DNA from: Ylistrum balloti
Lineage: Eukaryota
DNA length: 64,000 bases
Reading direction: 5' to 3'
NCBI RefSeq assembly: GCF_031769215.1
Contig: NW_026782299.1
Span: forward strand, 3,286,001-3,350,000
A program made the translations under genes and the position numbers. This document shows positions 1 to 35,154 of the stretch, piece after piece. Below the pieces are notes generated by a model. It was not told where the DNA came from, did not search any database, and was given only the letters and a program-made list of their open reading frames with translations. How positions within the stretch are numbered: position 1 is the stretch's first letter; each line of letters starts with the position of its first letter.

Positions 1-1277
1 AAGGTACAAAGTCTTATTTAATAACATTTACAAATGACTGTAACAAAGTAGAATGTGGGGGACTATGATTACTAAACTACAAACCTAAAAAACTTAAAAA
101 TAGGTCAGTGGTAGATTTCATTTAAATGGCCTTGGTGTAAGATGGAGGTGAAAAAGCTTGAGGACGGATAGATAACACCACACTTAAACATATTTCTTTA
201 CCACGTTACTATCTTCATTATATTTACTCATTTTTTCTTACAGACAGATTGGCAATCTCTGACAGGACTATCACTTTTTTCCACAATCCAATCAATTTTC
301 TATAAAGAACACATTGAAAAACTGTGCATTTTTACATAACTCTTTCAAAAACAATATCATTTTGATATAAAGATCTACACCTATTCACACTAAATGCTCT
401 AAAAATATCATGCCCGATTCATTGCTTTTCTCCATAATGAAGATAATTCTTTTAACAAAGTTGACCTTGTGTATTTCAATTAAATCTATCAATATATAAC
501 AGCAGTGATATTGTTACATGGTATAGCTGCAGGTGATTTCTGTTATGATCTCCTGATTTTTATAATGTTTTTTCTATCTAAACGGTTACTGTGATAACAC
601 TAACAGTTCCACTTCAGTAATGAAAGTAGCACACAGCGAGACACTTATGAAGGGAGTCATCAGTATGGTTATGTCAGAAAACAAATTTGCTGACAAGGAA
701 AACTGTTGTCCTGTCATGTTAATTGTTCAACTGATTAAATACATCTCATCTTACAGGTGCAATAACGATAATCTTTCAATTCTGCAAAAAGATCTTAACA
801 GTTTTGTTGTATTTTAAAACCTAACAACATCTGAGGTAAACCCGTTCAGACCATTAAATACTGATACAGGTCTTGAAACCTTCAGAAAAGTCTGTCAGTA
901 ATAATATCAGCATATCTCACACTGTTTCACAAATTTGAATTCTCGTCAAACAGTTCCAGCCGATTGAAAATTGACACACACGTACAAGAAAGTGGTCTGA
1001 TGCTAAACAGACACATTAAGTCTAGAACTGCTTTCATTTACACATACAAACCAACAGCAAACAAACCAATATGTTATCTTTTAAATGTAACAATTCAGGT
1101 ACAAATCAGGACCATCTGCAGTTATTGATAAAAGCCTCGTAAGATTTTCTCAAAACTTTCATAATTCAAAAGATCACGATCTTTATTTTGTGCCAGTATC
1201 AGCTTCTTCTCTACATTTTGTTTACAAGAGCTCTCTCATCTCTATAAATAAACATGACAGTGTCCCAGCAGTGTGTC

Positions 1278-4200
1278 TTAGTCCAGTATCACTTGTCCCT
1301 GTGAACCGTCAGGCATTATGTGTTTTTTACCGTGATGAATGTCATACTCTCGACGCAGAAATGCAAAAAGAAGGTCTGTGACTAGGAATATCTGAAAAAG
1401 CAGCACATATATATTAAACAGTAATAGTTTTTAACTCTTCTCTTATATGATATACATAAACCTGCTCATAATTCACATTTCTTGTGCTAAAATTCAGTGA
1501 AGACTATTTTAACAAGTTTGCAAAGATGACATGTACTAGTATCATATTGAAGTCTAATTTTAGGTTTTATTTTCCGTGAATATGTGGTCTTACCTCGGCT
1601 GTTGAGAACACTAAAGCAATGGCAAAGTAGAAGTTAGCATTAGCGCTTCCAGCATATAACCATAGATGATGAAGGATCGGCGCAAACACCGTCGTACAGA
1701 TGAACATGCATGTCACTACAAATGTATTACGCATATCTGAAAAGAAATAGATATTAAGTATTGCACAATTAGGATCCACACTAGATCTAGATTCAATGTT
1801 CTTTTTATAAATAAATACATTCAAACTGTTTATCCACTGTATGTAATAATACCTATTTCTTCCTCTGACTTCTTATTTCTTTACTCAATTTATGTTCACA
1901 TAAGATGCATCATCTAGTGGTGTAGTTGGGTTTTTGTTGATCATGTATGCTACGATATGGATGACACTACATTACTGTAATGTCTATTTTACTGCTTTCA
2001 CATTTCACATATAAAGAATTCATCAAATCAAAGTTTAAAAGGATCATGCACACGATCTATATTTTTCCATTTACAAAACAATTTTCTGAGTTGTCTTCTA
2101 TAGAATGAGCATGAATTTTGTAGAGTTTAGAGACTCAAAAAAGTTTTACATAAATTGAGAATAACACAAAATCAATAACATCTCTTTTGACTCATATAAA
2201 TAAACACTTAAAATGACTCTTTTTCACCTATCAGCATCTATGTTTGAGGCAATGCTTAATTTGTCTACATTTATAAAGACATAACTCCTAATTAACGCAT
2301 TAATCTACATTCACCCAATATTACCTACATAGATACTTACATGAGAACACATGTTTCCATAAAGGTAGTAAACACAGAAAGAGTCCCACATCAGCAAAAC
2401 TGGGATAGGATTTAAATATTCCAATCAGGAAGATTAGGAGGTACAGCAGAAAAAGTGGATGTTCTCTACAATAAACATACAGGATATCTTAATTTCTTAA
2501 TTAATTAATACTTCTAAATTGTCCAGACAAATATTTATCAATTTTTAGTATTGTTTGTTTGTTAGCATTCCATGAATAGCCGGGTCATTCTGAGGCAAGA
2601 ATTACCCCGAAGTAGCTGGTGGCTACCTTACTGAACAAAATTCACGTGTCAAGTCAGCCAAAATTGTTAGAGTAGGGAGACCAACCATCCAGAACCGTTA
2701 GATTAAGAAAGACTCCTTATCCAGAACTATTAGAGAAGGGAAGACCAGTCATCCAGAACTATTAGAGTGGGGAGACCAGTCATCCATAACTGTTAGAGAT
2801 GGGAGACCAGTCATCCAGAACTGTTAGAGAAGGGGAGACCAGCACTCCAGATCTGTTAGAGAAGGGAGACCAGTCATCTAGAACTGTTAGAGATGGGAGA
2901 CTAGTCATCCATAACTGTTAGAGATGGGAGACCAGTCATCCAGAACTGTTAGAGAAGGGGAGACCAGTACTCCAGATCTGTTAGAGAAGGGAGACCAGTC
3001 ATCTAGAACTGTTAGAGTAGGGAAGACCAGTCATCCAGAACTGTTAGAGAAGCGGAGACCAGCCATCCATAACTGTTAGAGTAGGGAAGACCAGTCATCC
3101 AGAACTATTAGATTGGGGAAGACCAGTCATCTAGAACTATCAGAAAAGGGAGACAGCCATTCAGAACTGTTAAAAGAAGGCAGACCAGTCATCCAGAACT
3201 GTTAGAGAAGGGAGACCAATCATCCAGAACTGCTAGAGTAAAATGTCTTGCCAAGGACACAATCATGACAACACAGAATGATTCATTTCTCAGCTTCATG
3301 AAAAACAAAACCGCCTTAGGTTATTAGAATTGAACCAAACACCTCAGATTGTCACTGACATAGTTATCACTGCTCTGAGTCAGTAAAGTCAGAAGAAAAT
3401 TACCTAATATATTGAAATTTATCGGAAATTTCTTATTGGAAAACTACATTCATTTTGAGATATCATTTGCAAGGAATATTTATTACAATACATGCCCATG
3501 GATAACATGATATACTTGAGGTGATCAATATAAAAATTAAAAGTGAAAACAACAGGTCACAATCTCTCCCACTTAAGGGCAATAACTTTGTCAGATACAC
3601 ATAAACATCGTCATAACAGTAAACAATCTGTACATCTGTAAAAAACATCATGACAGTTGAAGGTTCTTTAAAAAAAAATGTAAGTATACAAAGGGAAACA
3701 ACTCAATATGTCTTTCATGATGAATAATTTGATCCTTAGGTCAACACTATACCTGGGGTCATTGTGTAATTATCAATATTTACAACCTCTTGATTTCTTT
3801 AATAGGTTAAATTACATTACAACTGGTTGTTTTTGAGACTGAGAAACAAGTTTGGTGAATAGTAACCAATAAAATTTAAAGGTATGAGGCTTTTTAATCA
3901 GCGATTTCCATCAGTAGAAATGCTGTCCTCAGGCCTTGTCTTCATTGTCCTTCAGTTGTTAAATTTTCTTCAATTACATTTTCATTCAGTAATTATTTCT
4001 ACTCTATAGAATGTGATTTTTTAGATAATAACCATTTTTTGTTTTTTTTTAAAGGATGAAATGTAACCACAACATTTAAGATACATTTTAGTTCATATCA
4101 TCATTAAAATCTTGTTAACCATTAGAAAATATTAAAAAAAAAAAAAAAATGAAAATTTTCAGTAATTTTTGGTGATTCAATCAGTTGCACTGAAAAAGGA

Positions 4201-7200
4201 TACTCTATCAAATTTTATTTGTAGCAGATATATCTGTAGACTAATGTAATTTTGTTATAACACAAGTCACAACATTAAACTTGTAGTGACTGCTATTTGG
4301 CATTACACCCCTTTTTTTAAATCTGACAAAATTTTACCTGTAATTCAGCTGTTTTACATGGATCTTGATGGTTAAATCGCAGTTTACAAGACAATGCTGT
4401 ATGTCTTCATTTCATGATTATTTTCTAGAGCAACACTGACTGTTTCTTACCTGAGTTTGACAGAGAGTGGAACGGTGTAGATGATGACATTGATTTGAAA
4501 TACAAAGATGAAGAAAGTGCGGAAATGCTCAAACATCTCGGTAAAAAAATACCAGAAAACCCCCAGATTTGGTGTCAGATCCGGCACAGTCAATCTGAAA
4601 ACACAGAAATTAGAGAAATAACTGGATATTCTAAGTCTCCTAAAACAACTGCCATAATCAAGCAAAATGATTAATTTGTCAAATATAAAAAATGAATTCA
4701 TGTCAATTTTATTGAAATAAAAAACAATGTTTTAAATCAAAGCAATATTAAATTCTGTGTAAAATTCCTCTCAAATCAGAAAATAAATTAACATACTTTG
4801 CTGTCAAATTAGAAAATTAACACATGATTGAATTACTAATGAATTTCTATCAGTTCAACAGAATATAGAACTATGATATCTTACATAAGACTAAAACATA
4901 ATAATAAAACTCATAGAGGGTTGTGAATTCTGTCCTGCAAAATATCAAATTTTATAGAAAAGCTTTTGTATAAATTTCAGTAGGAAGTTTCCTTTTTTGT
5001 TTGCATGCTTACGTAAAACCATAGGTTGAGTACAGGAAATCCCAGGATTGTTCTAGGTAAGCTGACACACCGATAAATGCTGCTAACCAAGTCAGTGTGA
5101 TGAAACTGATCTGAGAATAGCTGAACAGGGCCTGGCGATCACAGTAAGTCTCACTGGCAGGCTTGGAATGCTTACAAATGGAAATTTAAACAAAAAATTT
5201 GGACAAAGTATAATTATGATAGTTTGTAGCGAAACAAAAATAACTTTCTAAATCTTGTTGTTTATTGAACGAATGGTCCAAATTATTTGTATCAGTAAAT
5301 ATCAAAACATTTCAAATATCAGAAATATATGTGTTGAATGAAATACAATACACTGAATCTGTTCATATTAGACAATTCACATCATCCCTTAGCTCAGATG
5401 GACTATCAAATCAATGTTTGCCAAGCAAATATGTTTTAAATCCAATTTATTGCAAAATATTGTTAAGACTTAAAGTATCATTCACTCAAAATGGTGTGAG
5501 AAAGAGGATTCTCAACCCAAAGGGTAAAGTTCTTATGTTGAAAACGTATGGCTATTCCCAGGTCTGATTCAGAATCTAACTACAAGGGTTGAGATTTCAT
5601 ATCTTCCACTTACATGGTCAGATCTCATATAACTGATATTGATGGTATTTCTGAAGACATGACTGACACTCCTGTTCTTTTATTTGAGAAAGAACTAAAT
5701 ATTACCCTTACATCATACGAACCTTGTAAAAGTAAATAGCCACTGGAGCCAAAAGGATGATGGGATACATTGTGAGGTAGGAAGCTAATGCCAAAAAACA
5801 TCCACACATAATTTTGTTACCTGTAAAAGTAAAAACATTCTATATAATTATCAACATACATTGTAAGATCTTGTAAAGTTAGTAAAGGGCAATAACTCTA
5901 TATCAAATGATGTACCACAGGTAAAAAGATTTGTTAAATATGCCTCAAAATAGATGAAACATAATAACAAAGGACAATACCTCTGAATATATAGGGAAAT
6001 AATGGATGAAGAAGTATATTAATCATATCTCAAGCCAGACAATGTATGCTATTGAAGGACAATAACTCAATACAGTGGCTCCACTGTGATATTCAAAGTT
6101 AAGCACATAATATCATTTGGAGTATGTATGACCTGCAATTTTAAAATTATATAAAGAAAACAACATTACCCTTCAGTAAGAAGTACATGGTAAACAGGAT
6201 TGCCATGTTGTTGAAAATGCCTGTAGACCTGGCAAGGCAGGCTGCTATACAGTATGGATTGAAAGCATGACTGAAAAGGTAGAGACAAAGCATAATTTAA
6301 TAGAACTACAGTGTTCCATCAAACACAGGGATAAAATTCAACATTAGTTCATTTATCAATAATTGAAAAGTAAAACCACAATATGATTTTAAGAAATGTA
6401 TATTCATAAACAGCCTTTTTTCAATTGGATAAATATTTGAAGAATTAAATAAACTGAAACCTTTAAGCAATGGGTTAGATTTTCATTGGGTTTTTTTTGC
6501 AATTTTTCACATTCAGCACATTTCAGGTAGAGAGAGAAATTTGTTGAGGAACAAACATTTTCAGCATGATCATTTTTCTAACACATTAGTATTAGAAAGT
6601 AAATGGGACAATTTATAGTTTACAAATCCCTGACAGGTCACAGGACACAACATTTCTTGTCTGTATATAACTCTGAGGATGAAACAACCCAGAAATGTAT
6701 GACAATGCTGAAAGTTAAATAAACATGGATGAACTACCTAGGAATACTCACGCTATTGTGACAAACAGCTGGACAGATTGTAGGTCCTCTGTTCGCAGAA
6801 TAAGGCTATCTACATCAGTAGCATAGTTCTTGACATTATGGGCCTGATGCATTAACTATACAAACAGATTGTGATGGGAATAAGTTGAAATCTTTTATAT
6901 CCAAGGATTAACTCAAGAAAGCTGAAATAATTCACCCACTGGTTTATTGATCTATCATTACAATGTGTACAATAGTTGTCTTGGAAATAACAGTAAAATC
7001 TACAACACAGGAGTTATTGCGAGTGTATTCTGTATCTCCTACATTATCCAAGTCACCTCTCTAAATATTTATAATAAAGAATAACCTGTAGATCACTTAG
7101 GCAATAAGAATTGTATGGTTTAAGTGTCACTACACTTGAAGATTTTTGGAGATGAAGAATGAGGAAAATGTTATTTGTCTCTTAAAATAAAAATAAAAAA

Positions 7201-24140: not shown

Positions 24141-27100
24141 ATGTCTTACAGTCAAATAACATTTAGTCGCGTGAGGGAGTATTTGATGAACGCGAATGAT
24201 TCAAGTTTCAACGGAAAGACTCCAGTGGGTGCCCAGCCAACAGTCATGATGTTTCAGTTTCCTGCTTCACCTAAAGATAATTACAACGAAGTTTATCCTG
24301 GGATCATAATTGGTGATAAGTAAGTTGTTTTATATCTCTTTATTGTTTTACAACAATGTTGTCGATGAATATTCATGTATCACAATTTCTACAAAAAATC
24401 ACTGCCTTTGTACTGTTCCTCAATCTCAGGATTTTTTGTCTGACATATATAAGGCAACATTTAATTCCTATTTAAGATCATGCTTGCAGATACTGATAAA
24501 TGTATTATAATTTCTCCATAATATTTCATAACATTTCTCCATGTTCTGTCAGTCCATTTTCATTTTTGCCCTTTGATGTGAAAAAAGGTCTCGTTCATTT
24601 TCAAAATCAAATTTTAAAATTATATTGAGTATACTGAATACATTTTATTTCATTTTATTATTTTTACTTGATTTTATAATAAAAAAAGTAAAATCATTTG
24701 ACAAAATAATGAAAATTAGACATTAAGATGTTGTTTAAGAGAATGAATATTTAGTCTGATATGAAAATATTTAGTTGTATTATATGTTGAAATATAAGTT
24801 AAGACAAAGGAAGGTATTGTATCTATGACTTTTGTTCTTAAATTTCAGAGTTTGTAGTAAAAATAAGAGACAACTGAAAGCCATGGGTGTGACACACGTT
24901 GTAAACTGTTGCCAAGGCATCAAACTGAACCAAATAGACAGTGACGTTACTTACTTTCGTGATGCAGGCATAACATTCCATGGAATACAAGCATTGGATC
25001 ACAGCTCCTATAATATGACTCCACATTTCAGTGCAGCAGCCAACTTTATAGAAAAAGCATTACAATCAAATGGTAAGGTTGAAATATTGATGACACACAT
25101 ATATATATTATTCATGTGCCATAATGTAAATGTACTTAGATTGGCAAACCTGGAGGGGTACTTTTATTTTAGCACTTGATCCATTTTTGGAATATTAGGA
25201 CAATGATGAATTTGTACATCCACATCCACATGTGACTTAAAAGAAGGGACTGACTTGATTACACAACAACAAAATAGAACAATGTTTATTTCAGAACAAC
25301 AAAACAGAAAAATGTTTATACAGAACAACAAAATAGAACAATGTTTATTTCAGAACAACAAAACAGAAAAATGTTTATACAGAACAACAAAATAGAACAA
25401 TGTTTATTTCAGAACAACAAAACAGAAAAATGTTTATACAGAACAACAAAACAGAACAATGTTTATACAGAACAACAAAACAGAACAATGTTTATACAGA
25501 ACAACAAAATAGAACAATGTTTATACAGAACAACAAAATAGAACAATGTTTATACAGAATAACAAAATAGAACAATGTTTATACAGAACAACAAAATAGA
25601 ACAATGTTTATACAGAACAACAAAATAGAACAATGTTTATACAGAACAACAAAATAGAACAATGTTTATACAGAACAACAAAACAGAATAATGTTTATAC
25701 AGAACAACAAAATAGAACAATGTTTATACAAAACAACAAAATAGACCAATGTTTATACAGAATAACAAAACAGAAAAATGTTTATACAGAACAACAAAAC
25801 AGAAAAATGTTTATACAGAACAACAAAATATAACAATGTTTATACAGAACAATGTTTATACAGAAGAACAAAAAAGAAAAATGTTTATACAGAACAACAA
25901 AACAGAAAAATGTTTATACAGAACAACAAAATAGAACAATGTTTATACAGAACAATGTTTATACAGAACAACAAAATATGACAATGTTTATACAGAACAA
26001 CAAAATAGAACAATGTTTATACAGAACAACAAAATAGAACAATGTTTATACAGAACAATGTTTATACAGAACAACAAAACAGAAAAATGTTTATACAGAA
26101 CAACAAAATAGAACAATGTTTATACAGAACAATGTTTATACAGAACAACAAAACAGAAAAATGTGTATACAGAACAATGTTTATACAGAACAACAAAACA
26201 GAAAAATGTTTATACAGAACAACAAAACAGAACAATGTTTATACAGAACAATGTTTATACAGAACAACAAAATAAAACAATGTTTATTTCAGAACAACAA
26301 AACAGAACAATGTTTATACAGAACAACAAAACAGAACAATTTTTATACAGAACAATGTTTATACAGAACAACAAAACAGAACAATGTTTATACAGAACAA
26401 TGTTTATACAAAACAACAAAACAGAAAAATGTTTATACAGAACAACAAAATAGAACAATGTTTATACAGAACAACAAAATAGAACAATGTTTATACAGAA
26501 CAACAAAATAGAACAATGTTTATACAGAATAACAAAATAGAACAATGTTTATATAGAATAACAAAATAGAACAATGTTTACAGAACAATGTTTATAGAAC
26601 AATTTTTATACAGAACAACAAAATAGAACAATGTTTATATAGAATAACAAAATAGAACAATGTTTATACAGAACAATGTTTATACAGAACAACAAAATTT
26701 AATTATCTTTATCATAGATAGGCTTATATTTTAAAACTTATTAATGATAAGATAATACAATGTATATATTTGTTTAAATGCCACAGTTCAGTTTTGGCAC
26801 TATTTTAAATTATTGGGGAAGACTAAATAAAAACAAAATATGATAAATCAAAAGAAAAACCATAATGATGATAAAGTAATTAAATTTGTGAAAAAATCAA
26901 ATGAACTATTTGTAAAAAAAAAAAAAAGTTAAATGGCAATTGTTTTGTTTTGAAAACTCAAGAAAATTGTTTGCAAATTTTGTATTGTTATTTGATGAAT
27001 AATTATTTTCAAATTAACAGGTGGAAAAGTTTATGTGCACTGCATGATGGGAATCAGCCGATCTGCCACCATTGTTCTAGCTTTCCTCCTGCTGAAGAAA

Positions 27101-29620: not shown

Positions 29621-31180
29621 ATATATTGCTATACATTATTCAAGGTATTTTTTTCGCAATTTCAATCAATTTTCATATAGATGATGCAAAATAAAACAGC
29701 CCAATTATAACTTTAATATGATATTGCCAGATGAAGATTCTAAAGTGCAAACCAGTCGTTAACAGTCAATCAACAGTTACTTAATTGGTTGTATAAGGAG
29801 ATCGCTAATAGGGAAAATATCTTCATTATACCCAGCAAATCAGAATGGATAATTCATTATCGTAGTTAGTGTGGTATTCGATTCTCAAACAAATAAGATC
29901 TTGATAATTGAAAGTGGCAATATTAACATTTTGAATGAATGCCACTGGATTTGGATGGTTGTATATACCAAGGATAAATATGGCTTAGAATACATCTTCA
30001 TACTAAGTACATGTTTGTTAGATTCTGTCATGGGATCAAAATGTATCTAGACAATAACTGCATGAAAATAGAGATGATATTAGAAAGTGAATTTAGCACC
30101 TTTCAATGCAAACTTAACATTGGATACTAATGACTCAAATAATGAATGCCTCATATAGTTTACTGCTGTTTCATCCATTGTGAATTGGGACTAGTTAACA
30201 ATGCTCTGGGCATGAAATGTTGAAACAAGGAGACAAGTGAGGAGAATCATAATGGGTCAAAATAGATGTTTAAAATCTGCAGCTAACCCCATTAAATCTA
30301 AAAAAAATTTGAAAACTGGAACAAAGATGACTGAATTAAATCGCAATTAACGAATATTCACTGTGAATTGATGTGAATAGATTGTCTACTTTTAGCGAAG
30401 ATGACCTGCTGTGATAATCAATGTCAAAATTATAGCTATATTGTTTATCGGGGTCTATAAGTTTAGAACAATGGTAACCACATAACCAAGATCTTGCAGT
30501 TATTATAGCTAGTTAACATGTATCTACATGTACTTTAATTTTATTGTTTACCGGTATTCTATTAAGTGATTAGATTATTGACTTGGTAGGATATTATCTA
30601 GATCACGTTAGAGGGATGACTAGATCAGTTGCAGGAAATAAAAGTAACCGGAAAGTCATCTGGTATTAAACATTAATATTGATACCAGGAAAGAGTACCC
30701 AGATTCATCTTCATGGAACGATGTTTGATGTAATACTGTTAACGAAAATAAGTGGTTTGTTTAAAGATTGAAAGGATTGTGCAAAATACAGGTGAAAATC
30801 ACCTGTCAATACAATTTTTACAAATAATGAATTAAACTGCATCATAAACTGATTCATCCTTTTAGGACTCGTGATCAGTGAAGCTAATGCCATAATATAC
30901 TGTTGGAAATCTTTTGAATGAAGGTGATTGGATCTGATACTGGGAATGGACATGGAATCTGGACTAGCATATACAAAGATTGTCTGGATTGGCAGCAGGG
31001 AACGAGTGTCATTGGAAGAGCTCTTGGGATCTAAAATGGTTTCATTCGTTGCTGAAAATAGATTTGATTGGATTTGCTCCTAGGACAAATCGTTGACTGG
31101 GGGACAGAAGATGGTACAGTAGATTCACCTACTGCAAATGATTATATTTGATTCAGCTGTTGGGAGCAATGGCAACTTTT

Positions 31181-31750
31181 CTACTGGGAACAAACATGGT
31201 TAGTTAATCTACTGGGAACAAACATGGTTAGTTAATCTACTGGGAACAAACATGGTTAGTTAATCTTCTGGGAACAAACATGGTTAGTTAATCTACTGGG
31301 AACAAACATGGTTAGTTAATCTACTGGGAACAAACATGGTTAGTTAATCTTCTGGGAACAAACATGGTTAGTTAATCTACTGGGAACAAACATGGTTAGT
31401 TAATCTACTGGGAACAAACATGGTTAGTTAATCTACTGGGAACAAACATGGTTAGTTAATCTACTGGGAACAAACATGGTTAGTTAATCTACTGGGAACA
31501 AACATGGTTAGTTAATCTACTGGGAACAAACATGGTTAGTTAATCTACCGGGAACAAACATGGTTAGTTAATCTACTGGGAACAAACATGGTTAGTTAAC
31601 CTACTGGGAACAAACATGGTTAGTTAATCTACTGGGAACAAACATGGTTAGTTAATCTGCTGGGAACAAACATGTTTAGTTAATCTACTGGGAACAAACA
31701 TGGTTAGTTAATCTTCTGGGAACAAACATGGTTAGTTAATCTTCTGGGAA
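31181..31750. repeat. 28-bp minisatellite (CTACTGGGAACAAACATGGTTAGTTAAT), about 20 near-perfect copies
   Basis: Period 28 (31181 to 31209), highly homogeneous. Confidence 0.95.
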
Positions 31751-31789
31751 AGATGAGCGTTGTATCAATGCTGGTTAATTTAGCTACTG

Positions 31790-33020
31790 GCAACAACAGT
31801 GATTGGTTCGATAATGGTCAGTAAACCTAATGAGAATGCGATGATTGGATCGATGATGGTCAGCAAACCTACTGAGAATGATGATGATTGGATCGATGAT
31901 GGTCAGCAAACCTACTGAGAATGCGATGATTGGATCGATGATGGTCAGCAAACCTACTGAGAATGCGATGATTGGATCGATGATGGTCAGCAAACCTACT
32001 GAGAATGCGATGATTGGATCGATGATGGTCAGCAAACCTACTGAGAATGACGATGATTGGATCGATGATGGTCAGCAAACCTACTGAGAATGTGATGATT
32101 GGATCGATGATGGTCAGCAAACCTGAGAATGACGATGATTGGATCGATGATGGTCAGCAAACCTACTGAGAATGCGATGATTGGATCGATGATGGTCAGC
32201 AAACCTACTGAGAATGTGATGATTGGATCGATGATGGTCAGCAAACCTGCTGAGAATGCGATGATTGGATCGATGATGGTCAGCAAACCTTCTGAGAATG
32301 ATGATGATTGGATCGATGATGGTCAGCAAACCTGAGAATGACGATGATTGGATCGATGATGGTCAGCAAACCTACTGAGAATGCGATGATTGGATCGATG
32401 ATGGTCAGCAAACCTACTGAGAATGACGATGATTGGATCGATGATGGTCAGCAAACCTACTGAGAATGCGATGATTGGATCAATGCTGGTCAGCAAACCT
32501 GCTGAGAATGATGATGATTGGATCGATGATGGTCAGTAAAACTACTGAGAATGCGATGATTGGATCGATGATGCCTAATTAATCTACTGGAAATGATGAG
32601 GCCTGGATTATGGCTATTTAAGCCACTGGATATGATGATGGTTGGAGCAATGATGGCTTATTCATCAACTGGGAACAGTGATGATTGGATCAAATATGGC
32701 TAATTAAGCTGCTGGATATGATGATGATTGGAACGATGATGGCTAATTCAGGTACTGGGAATGATTAAGGTTGGATTGGTGATGGCTAATTAAGCTGCTG
32801 GATACGATGGTGGTTAGTTCAGTTACTGGAAATGATGACGGTTGTACGGATTACAGCTATTACATCTACTGGATACGATGATGGTTGGAACGATGTGGGT
32901 TAATTGATCAACTTGAAACAGTGATGATTGGATCAGTAATGACCATTTCATCTAATGGAAATGATGAGGGTTGGATCGGTGATGGTTAGTTCAGTTGCTG
33001 AGAACGATGATGATTGGTCA
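31790..33020. repeat. 42/43-bp minisatellite (CTACTGAGAATGCGATGATTGGATCGATGATGGTCAGCAAAC), homogeneous to ~32560 and then a degenerate 43-bp array to ~33020
   Basis: Direct repeats; the 14-aa repeat ORFs in the track (LTIIDPIIAFSVGL, MIGSMMVSKPTENA) come from the 42-bp variants. Confidence 0.92.
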
Positions 33021-33691
33021 AGTTACCAGGGACGAATAGCTTTTAGAATTCTTTTAGGAAATGAGGAGCTAGTTTATCTTCTTAAAAAAAGAAGTGGTAC
33101 GATTCTGAAGCAGCGGAAGTGCTTGATTTCAGTTTGTTGGTAGATACTTATTCATCAAATGAAGTTAAGTGTTAACGCATTTGCTTTCCATCATTTAAAG
33201 TGGTATTTATTTCTGCCGATGAATTTAAAGTATTGAGCCTTTTGTTTCCTCCTATGTCCTGTACCATTTTTATTCAATTCCAATCACTCATTGATTTCTT
33301 GGTAGCTGTACAATAGGGAGTGTGTGGGATAATTTAGACATGAGCAAACATAGCTTGTATGTCAACTCACCTTGATAACAAGGCATCTGCATGGAATCTA
33401 TGATATTGCATCACAAAAATGACATGGATTTGGAAAATGTTATATGTTATTATCAAATGTAAAATCTTTTAAAATGTTTAAACATCGTTGAAACAACCTA
33501 ATGCTTAACATATTGTTAACGTTGAATATGTACTAATAGCATGCATTAGCAAGCTCCTCTTGGACATTCATAAACCACATATCTGAATACTTAGTTTTCG
33601 TGACTATGTTTGGAAATGTTTACTCTTATTTACGAGATGAAGTCTTTGCAGGCGTGGAATATTATCGAGAGTGCACTCAGGCTACCTGAAA

Positions 33692-35154
33692 ATGTTGGAG
33701 ATATCGGATGAAGTGCCTGTCTGTGTTGTCCTTGACAATGGGTCCCATACTATCAAAACAGGATTTGCTGGGGATGATGGTCCAGTTCGGATATTTCGTA
33801 CAGTTAAAGGAACACCATTGCTTGAGGTGGTTACATTTCAGTTTTCTTTGTTCCCTACATTTCTTTATACAACTTTTTTTACAGTGACTGATAAATGGGA
33901 GGACCAATTTTATTTTATTGTGAACAATGTTTACGTATACTGTGTCAACGTATTTGAATAACAATTATGTATGTCTATATTATTTGAACCACAACTTGAA
34001 ATATAGACTTTACCTCAGTGATAATTGTTTGTTTGTTTTCGATTAAGCAAGAATCTAGAGTGTTACTTCAGTAACCAACAATTAATATTTCTATTACATT
34101 CACTAGGATGTGAATTTCAATATACATGTGCTTGAACTGTTGATTTTTGTAGGACCATATGATCAAGGATAGCTCAAAGAAAAAGTGTTACGTTGGTGAT
34201 GAGGTAATTGCAAATATGGATGTCCTAGACATTCGAAGACCAATCGAGCGAGGGATAGTTACCGATTGGGATGCCATGGAGACAGTTTGGCACCATGTAT
34301 TTGATGATATTTGCGTAAAACCGTCTAACGTAAACGTCCTTGTAACAGAACCACAGATGAATCCAAAGTCAAACAGAGAGAAACTGGCACAAATCATGTT
34401 TGAGAAAATTCAGCCTCAAGGAATGTATATTTTTAGCTCCAACGTGTTGTCACACTATGCGTGCGGACGGGTGTCAGGCCTCGTGGTAGATTCGGGCTAT
34501 GAAATGACAAGTGTTGTGTGTGTGTATGAAGGCTATAAAGTTTCTCAGTGTATCTTCAGATCCGATATCGGCGGCAATGATGTTACTAATTACTTGATCG
34601 AACTTCTTGGAAAACGAGGTTACTCGTTCACTACAGCAAAAGAAATTGAGGAAGCTAACACAATGAAGGACAGATTGGCTTTTGTTGCAGAAAATCCTGA
34701 AGCAGTGGATGTGGATTCCATCACAAAGGATTATACGTTATCCAACGGAAATACCATTCACCTTGGTTACGAAAGGTTCCAGTGCGTGGAGGCCATGTTT
34801 AAACCAAAACTGATTGGAAGTAATGACTACGGTATACATGAACTAGTTTTGAAAAGCATCAAAAGTTGCCCTTTTGATACTCGACTTGATATCTGCGCCA
34901 ATGTTATCATTACAGGTGGCAATACAATGATAGATGGGCTAAGTTCTAGATTGGACAAGGAAATTCGGGCAGTATTGCCTACAAACATTCGAATCAAAGT
35001 CATTGCTCCCCCCGAAAGACGCTATTCATCCTGGATAGGAGGATCAATTGTAGGAAGTCTATATACTGCACGGCAAATGTGCATGAGACCAGCAGAGTAT
35101 GACGAATTTGGTCCTAACATAGTTTACAGACCACAATTCTTTAATTATTGGTGA
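33692..35154 (+). CDS. Divergent actin-like protein, copy A, 378 aa
   Basis: Exons 33692-33826 (GAG|GT) and 34153-35154. Actin-fold motifs: VVLDNGS, GFAGDD, YVGDE, PIERGIVTDWD, NPKSNREK, DSG, YEG, RGYSFTT, ERFQC, GIHE, APPER, WIGGSI, EYDE.GP. About 45% identity to beta-actin by manual alignment (170/375). Confidence 0.92.

Follow-up and report, generated by a model that had tools for sequence, protein, structure and literature searches.

The ATPase switch of actin is among the most conserved mechanisms of eukaryotes, and a row of actin-like genes in the scallop Ylistrum balloti raises the question of what an actin fold can be for once the residues that work this switch have been replaced. The genes lie in a stretch of 64,000 nucleotides (contig NW_026782299.1, positions 3,286,001 to 3,350,000), here called the window, in which all coordinates below are counted unless another sequence is named. 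An earlier note, made from the letters of the window alone, had proposed that every intact copy has lost catalytic and phosphate-clamp residues, and that the encoded proteins may bind nucleotide without hydrolysing it or have a remodelled cleft. The source of the window is confirmed by the exon-2 translation of the first copy, which matches RefSeq P0001 ('actin, clone 302-like [Ylistrum balloti]') at 100% identity.

The window contains three intact two-exon genes, copies A, B and C, which stand head to tail on the + strand, and a decayed fourth copy besides. Their proteins of 378, 377 and 377 amino acids are about 46% identical to actin, and the spliced models agree residue for residue with RefSeq P0001, P0003 and P0005 respectively. 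Each copy has a single coding intron with GT..AG ends and phase 0, placed by alignment between actin codons 41 and 42. The features concerned are listed here, with actin numbering in brackets.

33630..33691, + strand: predicted 3' splice acceptor of copy A (cag/GCGTGGA, read from the sequence) and the 40-nt 5'UTR part of the ATG exon
33692..33826, + strand: coding exon 1 of copy A, 45 codons, GT donor at 33827; holds D15, S18, H19 and K22 (actin D11, S14, G15H and K18)
34153..35154, + strand: coding exon 2 of copy A, stop codon included; Pfam Actin 6e-92
34249-34251, + strand: R78 of copy A (actin H73)
34420..34530, + strand: codons 135-171 of copy A, exactly the segment singled out by the earlier note, with the Q137 position and the entire P2 phosphate loop; GMYIFSSNVLSHYACGRVSGLVVDSGYEMTSVVCVYE
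34438-34440, + strand: S141 of copy A (actin Q137)
34489-34503, + strand: D158-S-G-Y161-E162 of copy A (actin D154 to G158)
34510-34512, + strand: S165 of copy A (actin H161)
34519-34521, + strand: C168 of copy A (actin P164)
34576-34578, + strand: N187 of copy A (actin R183)
37009..37785, + strand: decayed fourth copy (pseudogene) between A and B, with in-frame stops, frameshifts and deletions
about 39161/39162, + strand: equivalent splice acceptor of copy B
39198..39329, + strand: coding exon 1 of copy B; Y18 (actin G15)
39583..40584, + strand: coding exon 2 of copy B; Pfam Actin 3e-89; R77, P140, N157, Y160-E161, S164, C167 and N186 in its own numbering
about 42913/42914, + strand: equivalent splice acceptor of copy C
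42953..43084, + strand: coding exon 1 of copy C; Y18 (actin G15)
45388..46389, + strand: coding exon 2 of copy C; Pfam Actin 2e-84; R77, P140, D157, Y160-E161, T164, C167 and N186 in its own numbering

The acceptor common to A, B and C reads cag followed by G/A-T/C-GTGGA, 36-40 nt 5' of the ATG, and its conservation upstream of each start codon indicates that the ATG exon is not the first exon. Several other features of the window were recorded. The coding intron of copy C is 2.3 kb long and filled by a 45-nt minisatellite at 44268-45316 (about 23 units, higher-order period 338); the equivalent introns of copies A and B, and that of Argopecten, measure only 215-330 nt. A second minisatellite block, directly upstream of the cluster at 31180-32886, consists of a 28-nt unit repeated 20 times and then a 42-nt unit repeated 18-23 times, and explains the repetitive minus-strand ORFs at 31784-32286. 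The only public run holding the stretch (run X1) was set aside as evidence of expression in Y. balloti, since its contigs run through introns and intergenic DNA and the run is thus DNA, from another individual. Its contig depth climbs from about 10 to 230-5000, with many loose ends, at 38650-39050 just upstream of copy B, a segment that is a high-copy dispersed repeat. Two ORF pieces at 13857-14192 and 24832-25176 (+ strand) are similar, with scores under the curated cutoff (Pfam DSPc; E 1e-4 and 5e-7), to the first half of the catalytic domain of dual-specificity phosphatases; they are probably exons of two paralogous DUSP-like genes.

By Pfam and by modelled fold, the three proteins are members of the actin superfamily. 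Exon 2 of each matches Pfam PF00022 (Actin) far beyond the 27-bit cutoff, and the AlphaFold2 model of copy A reaches a mean pLDDT of 87.3 and a pTM of 0.84, with block pLDDT of 88-93 in the P1 and P2 loop regions. The best 50 Foldseek matches of this model in the PDB are all actin chains (TM 0.88-0.96, rmsd 1.2-2.9 Å), the best of them G-actin at TM 0.91-0.95 and rmsd 1.2-2.3 Å. The best PDB sequence matches of copy A in phmmer are likewise actins, with E about 1e-96 and 45-48% identity, and no actin-related protein (Arp) stands among the best 60 listed, all of which are actins at 317 bits or more; by the ranking of scores alone, copy A is therefore no closer to any solved Arp than to actin, and orthology with a canonical class (Arp1-6, 8 or 10/11) is not supported.

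Within this fold the substitutions that the earlier note had read from the sequence were all recovered, by phmmer against PDB beta-actin for copy A and by MAFFT for B and C. In the order A, B, C, Q137 has become S, P and P, H161 has become S, S and T, and D157-G158 is Y-E throughout; copy B additionally has N in place of D154. G15 is H, Y and Y, the copy A exon 1 segment DNGSHTIK aligning to DNGSGMVK, and D11, S14 and K18 are retained in the same exon 1 alignment and in the MAFFT alignments of B and C. Also retained are K213 and much of the G301-T304 loop, in which G301 and T304 are kept, G302 is G, S and S, and T303 is N. When copy A exon 2 was compared with all PDB chains (phmmer), actin residues 132-186 aligned without a gap, so that the register cannot shift, and the pairing of MYIFSSNVLSHYACGRVSGLVVDSGYEMTSVV with actin gives Q137S, D157Y, G158E and H161S.

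The same changes are found in other scallops. A word-index search yielded 12 family members, which are A, B and C together with proteins of Pecten maximus, Mizuhopecten yessoensis and Argopecten irradians, the other members being 58-71% identical to copy A. Member P0013 derives from a Logan contig that maps at 99.8-100% to the A. irradians genome; no contig position was found for P0004. A maximum-likelihood tree unites the 12 members in a single clade (100/100) with a long stem (0.68 changes per site), and the A-, B- and C-type groups inside it each include sequences from Ylistrum, Pecten and Argopecten. Both the triplication and the changes of residue thus predate the split of these three genera. 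Compact one-strand tandem arrays, in triplets, occur in Pecten maximus and A. irradians as well, and in the NCBI annotation of Pecten, Mizuhopecten and Argopecten the paralogues figure as isoforms X1-X6 of a single gene.

When the family profile was run against 1.84 billion representatives, the whole family fell into one 50% cluster scoring 720 bits, the single-domain matches ranking next reached about 440 bits and had the conventional pattern D-S-G-K...Q-D-G-D-G-H, and the higher-scoring entries were multi-domain sums. No relatives outside scallops, and none closer than ordinary actin, were found in this search. Two high scorers from Aplysia and Biomphalaria (P0012 and P0014) were rejected as outgroup members, being conventional actins with DSGDG, Q137 and H161 intact that are either internally duplicated or products of fused gene models. 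Protist and environmental proteins with YE or WE motifs (P0199, P0209 and others) were rejected as distant members, as they score below actin and fall outside the clade. Searches of the literature found no paper describing the scallop family and nothing relevant on a scallop actin gene-family survey or on scallop testis actin-like genes, and the public names are generic ('actin, cytoplasmic 2-like', 'uncharacterized protein'). On these comparisons of sequence, A, B and C are best read as paralogues of a Pectinidae-specific orphan family of actin-related proteins. The family is undescribed, and it probably belongs to a known kind, that of divergent actin-related proteins with a non-catalytic cleft.

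All 12 members have H or Y at position 15, P or S at 137, Y or F at 157, E at 158 and a residue other than His at 161, where S, D, T and I occur. The alignment also brought out changes absent from the earlier note, of which H73 to R, R183 to N, P164 to C, T303 to N and a K191E/E195K charge swap are present in 12 of 12 members; H173 is Q in 11. A pattern carried by every member in four scallop genera points to shared ancestry under selection and not to chance, and the coupled changes of H73 and R183 make the pocket look like a compensated rebuild. Alongside these replacements, D11, N12, G13, S14, K18, S155, G156, T160, K213, G301 and T304 are kept in 11 or 12 members, and the metal, phosphate and ribose ligands that are kept also include E214, M305 and D154 (the last in 10 of 12). 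Residues Y306, K336 and R210, around the adenine and ribose, vary within the family. Cleft positions match the actin consensus at 10 of 19 sites and the remainder of the protein at 190 of 368, an equal rate; the signal is therefore one of normally invariant sites that were changed and then fixed, not of an excess of change in the cleft. At the C-terminus (35131-35151 in copy A) the ...HRKCF of actin is replaced in all members by a longer, aromatic-rich tail, for example YRPQFFNYW, FRPEFNKYG or YRPEYFLYW, and C374 is lost.

Constraint within the family differs between cleft and filament surfaces. Residue sets, drawn from general knowledge of actin structures, were compared with random sets of equal size. 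The phosphate and catalytic set (11-18, 73, 74, 137 and 154-161) has a within-family conservation of 0.873, above the mean of 0.765 for all positions (permutation P=0.012), and the F-actin contact set (D-loop, hydrophobic cleft, SD4-SD3, plug and lateral positions) has 0.683, below that mean (P=0.001). These values suggest a cleft that is still functional in some way and canonical filament surfaces that are relaxed. Comparing A, B, C and an Argopecten member two by two gives dN/dS values of 0.11-0.25, with dS saturated, which indicates purifying selection, much weaker than that on actin.

It is hard to reconcile such constraint with the view that these are redundant actin duplicates drifting to pseudogenes, their replacements being simple decay, and we consider that view highly improbable. 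One cluster copy has indeed become a pseudogene, and the individual behind run X1 differs from the window in copy A by 4 nonsynonymous changes (I98L, V167M, K282R and T322P) against 2 synonymous ones, with no exonic indels; these differences are too few to interpret and give no sign of strong present-day constraint. Against decay stand the intact ORFs, the presence in four genera of orthologues of each paralogue, the dN/dS of 0.1-0.25, the fixity of the replaced residues and the existence of spliced transcripts. What decay looks like can be seen next door at 37009-37785, where a copy recognisable as the same family from its P2 loop, still DSGYD, is about three times more polymorphic than copy A in the second individual (25 differences and 5 gaps, 1435 nt). 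The suggestion that the changes are ancestral and selected is accordingly upheld by the orthologues in four genera, the monophyly of the family, its dN/dS and the above-average conservation of the cleft.

The transcripts come from A. irradians, in which three members are represented by Logan contigs L001, L004 and L005; these align to the genome at 99.8-100% and lack exactly the coding intron. Two of the three are from SRR23580857, a gill-tissue metatranscriptome according to its depositors (PMC10989825). The family is thus transcribed and spliced, and not only in the germline. An analogy with the testis-specific Arps of flies and mammals was considered and found unsupported, the two transcripts of known tissue being from gill. 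The Argopecten acceptors equivalent to those of the ATG exons (positions 4997 and 9928 of L003) are used in transcripts L004 and L005. In L004 (bases 30/31) position 6002/6003 of L003 is joined to 9928 through a canonical GT donor (AAT/gtaaga), and since this donor sits in coding exon 2 of the upstream paralogue and the acceptor belongs to the 5'UTR of the next, tandem copies are linked by read-through or chimeric transcripts.

What the altered cleft may still do can be judged from residues studied in actin and its relatives. Residue H73 is the methyl-histidine nucleotide-state sensor of actin. Q137 holds the attacking water in place, H161 has been proposed to serve as base or relay, and either Q137A or H161A abolishes hydrolysis in Arp2/Arp3 with little effect on nucleation or assembly (PMC3587832). 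Arp4, whose residue 137 is T, binds ATP but shows no hydrolysis, and Arp8, which carries G15T, Q137E, H161S and H73R, binds ATP tightly and has basal ATPase activity only (PMC3510490). The gamma-phosphate is held by the backbone amides of 157-159, and the position of S14/G15 depends on the nucleotide state (bioRxiv 10.1101/309534). As the phosphates are held by the backbone amides of residues 14-16 and 157-159 and not by side chains, changes of side chain need not abolish binding or even hydrolysis. In cells, G158L actin behaves like ATP-binding-impaired actin, and G15L, G15K and D157A are tolerated (PMC12174402). The side chain of R183 pairs with D157, and the H73-R183 pocket adjoins the phosphate site (bioRxiv 10.1101/2023.03.25.534205).

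Set against these precedents, the proposal that the scallop proteins bind nucleotide without hydrolysing it stands in part. With Q137 and H161 lost, the Arp2/Arp3 mutants and Arp4 give a fair basis for predicting that actin-type ATPase activity has gone, and both polymerisation-activated ATPase and H73-based state sensing are likely to have been lost. Nucleotide binding is plausible but uncertain; the drift of the adenine contacts Y306, K336 and R210 would argue against tight adenine binding, and E158 might take on a catalytic or metal-binding role.

Read on the changes of sequence, fold, conservation, restriction to scallops and transcription that were directly observed, the family most probably encodes a non-hydrolysing protein, probably holding a cofactor, with a rebuilt cleft still under selection, to which we give a probability of about 0.6. 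The family would have arisen by duplication of an intron-bearing actin gene, and its tandem array, already in place when Ylistrum, Pecten and Argopecten separated, has been maintained. The actin fold and a selected nucleotide cleft would have been retained and the cleft rebuilt, with the water-positioning and relay pair Q137/H161 and the sensor H73 gone and a bulky H or Y placed at the G15 position. The D157-R183 salt bridge of actin would be removed (Y/F157, N183) and an E158/R73 acid-base pair gained nearby, so that a charge pair is relocated and the local charge balance presumably kept. Such a protein would have neither polymerisation-activated ATP hydrolysis nor a phosphate-release switch, and would most likely hold nucleotide, or at least phosphate and metal, constitutively as a structural cofactor, as in Arp4. 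Since conservation in the protein is lowest on the filament-contact surfaces, the products are probably monomeric or hetero-oligomeric actin-shaped subunits or regulators rather than canonical F-actin.

The positions involved also vary together elsewhere. Among 237 actin-like domains outside the family, E158 occurs in 8, of which 7 have R or K at 73 (Fisher p=1.4e-5), and a non-acidic 157 accompanies a non-basic 183 (p=5e-6), these p values, like the two that follow, taking no account of kinship among the sequences. Non-Q137 accompanies non-H161 in actin-like domains outside the family (p=2e-18), and in other divergent actins an aromatic 15 accompanies an aromatic 157 (p=0.002).

This last association also suits a fold that has locked itself without nucleotide. 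Here E158 would fill or neutralise the gamma-phosphate site and pair with R73, the aromatics at 15 and 157 would fill the phosphate tunnel, and the cleft would be kept closed without any nucleotide. Several observations would fit: every family member has E for G158 and R for H73, and these two replacements also occur together in unrelated lineages; the adenine and ribose contacts Y306, K336 and R210 drift; and G158L actin resembles ATP-binding-inhibited actin in cells (PMC12174402). We nevertheless judge it unlikely, because the strong conservation of D11, S14, K18, D154, K213, E214, G301, T304 and M305 is hard to explain without a bound nucleotide or metal. Arp4 (BAF53) has Y at the G15 position, which also counts against a locked, empty cleft. 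Arp8, with T at that position, still binds ATP tightly (PMC3510490).

It is also conceivable that the proteins are rewired, active and possibly polymerising ATPases, in which E158 or D154 activates the water in place of Q137/H161 and the changed filament contacts co-evolved for homo- or hetero-polymers of the paralogues. The actin-fold ATPases ParM, MreB and Hsp70 use an acidic catalytic residue, the constraint on the cleft is above average, and several interface changes are fixed (R62M, G63D, E241T, P243S, D286P and the K191E/E195K swap). This possibility seems distinctly improbable in view of the N at 154 in copy B and the variability at 161, which is unlike that of a relay residue. The interface set is, moreover, significantly less conserved than the rest of the protein, and change and variability extend to both the D-loop and the residues that accept it, T148, L346 and F352.

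The non-hydrolysing, probably cofactor-holding reading, which we prefer, leaves room for a wider and more tentative idea, which we think rather unlikely to hold. The combination of an aromatic residue or His at 15, Arg or Lys at 73, an aromatic at 157 and Glu at 158 might be a recurrent, convergent form of permanently closed, switchless actin fold with the glutamate as a stand-in for the gamma-phosphate, paired with the residue that has taken the place of the sensor histidine. Outside scallops this configuration is found independently in several divergent actin-like proteins, one from a EukProt transcriptome and others from environmental or unassigned assemblies. If the idea is true, such proteins would form a distinct structural class of actin pseudoenzyme and not another drifted Arp.

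A fold of near-actin size with a rebuilt catalytic cleft and without the insertions of nuclear Arps offers a useful natural experiment, which could show which residues are needed for nucleotide binding, for hydrolysis and for sensing of state. The compensated set is compact (loss of D157-R183, gain of E158-R73, loss of Q137 and H161); it is older than the divergence of four scallop genera, has been retained since then, and reappears in part among unrelated eukaryotes. The family adds a mollusc example to the lineage-specific Arp expansions of flies, mammals and protists. In practice, the public label 'actin, cytoplasmic-like' misleads those who take scallop actins as reference genes or who count actin families.

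Conventional actins are about 80-90% or more identical to one another across eukaryotes. The scallop family reaches only 42-49% identity with them, and with this identity and the catalytic set replaced, its proteins are, on their sequences, not conventional actins. They share with actin the fold, the length, the acidic N-terminus, the phase-0 intron between codons 41 and 42 and the core motifs IAPPER..WIGGS, RGYSFTT and NREKM. They differ in the replacement of G15, H73, Q137, D157, G158, H161, P164, H173, R183 and T303, in a 6-residue deletion in subdomain 4 and a 4-residue aromatic C-terminal extension, in altered D-loop, plug and longitudinal contacts, and in a far faster rate of evolution.

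Non-hydrolysing actin folds are already known in Arp4 (BAF53) and Arp8, and these are proposed as the functional model for the scallop family. They too have an actin fold with catalytic and sensor residues replaced, and the loss of the water-positioning and relay residues that marks an Arp4-like pseudo-ATPase is found in the family (Q137 to P/S; H161 to S/D/T/I). Arp4 and Arp8 bind ATP tightly with no or basal hydrolysis, and neither polymerises (PMC3510490). They differ from the scallop proteins in having long insertions and no orthology with them, and there is no hint of a nuclear role for the scallop family; Arp8 keeps D154, G156 and D157, whereas the family has Y/F157-E158.

As lineage-restricted duplicates, the scallop genes also resemble Drosophila Arp53D, the Arps of the obscura group and mammalian ACTL7A/B, ACTRT1-3 and ACTL8, which are young, fast-evolving actin or Arp duplicates that selection has preserved (PMC7038667, PMC8291977). 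Unlike the scallop family, the Arps of the obscura group still have the motif for ATP binding and hydrolysis, and at least one Drosophila gene, Arp2D, is a retroduplicate without introns (PMC7038667), whereas the scallop genes are intron-bearing tandem duplicates. The scallop family differs further from these Arps in being transcribed in gill and not demonstrably germline-specific.

Divergent actin paralogues of protists (the Paramecium subfamilies, Anaeramoeba and the foraminifer Bolivina) have had the same cleft positions replaced independently. Two proteins of this kind come close to the scallop pattern, P0199, a EukProt transcriptome sequence, with Y15/R73/Y157/E158, and P0209, from an ENA contig, with Y15/R73/W157/E158. 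In Paramecium, G158 is kept in all actin isoforms (PMC1852557). The protist paralogues score about 330-345 bits against the scallop profile, on which ordinary actin scores about 440, and they do not group with the scallop clade, so that their likeness to the scallop proteins is one of convergence and not of kinship.
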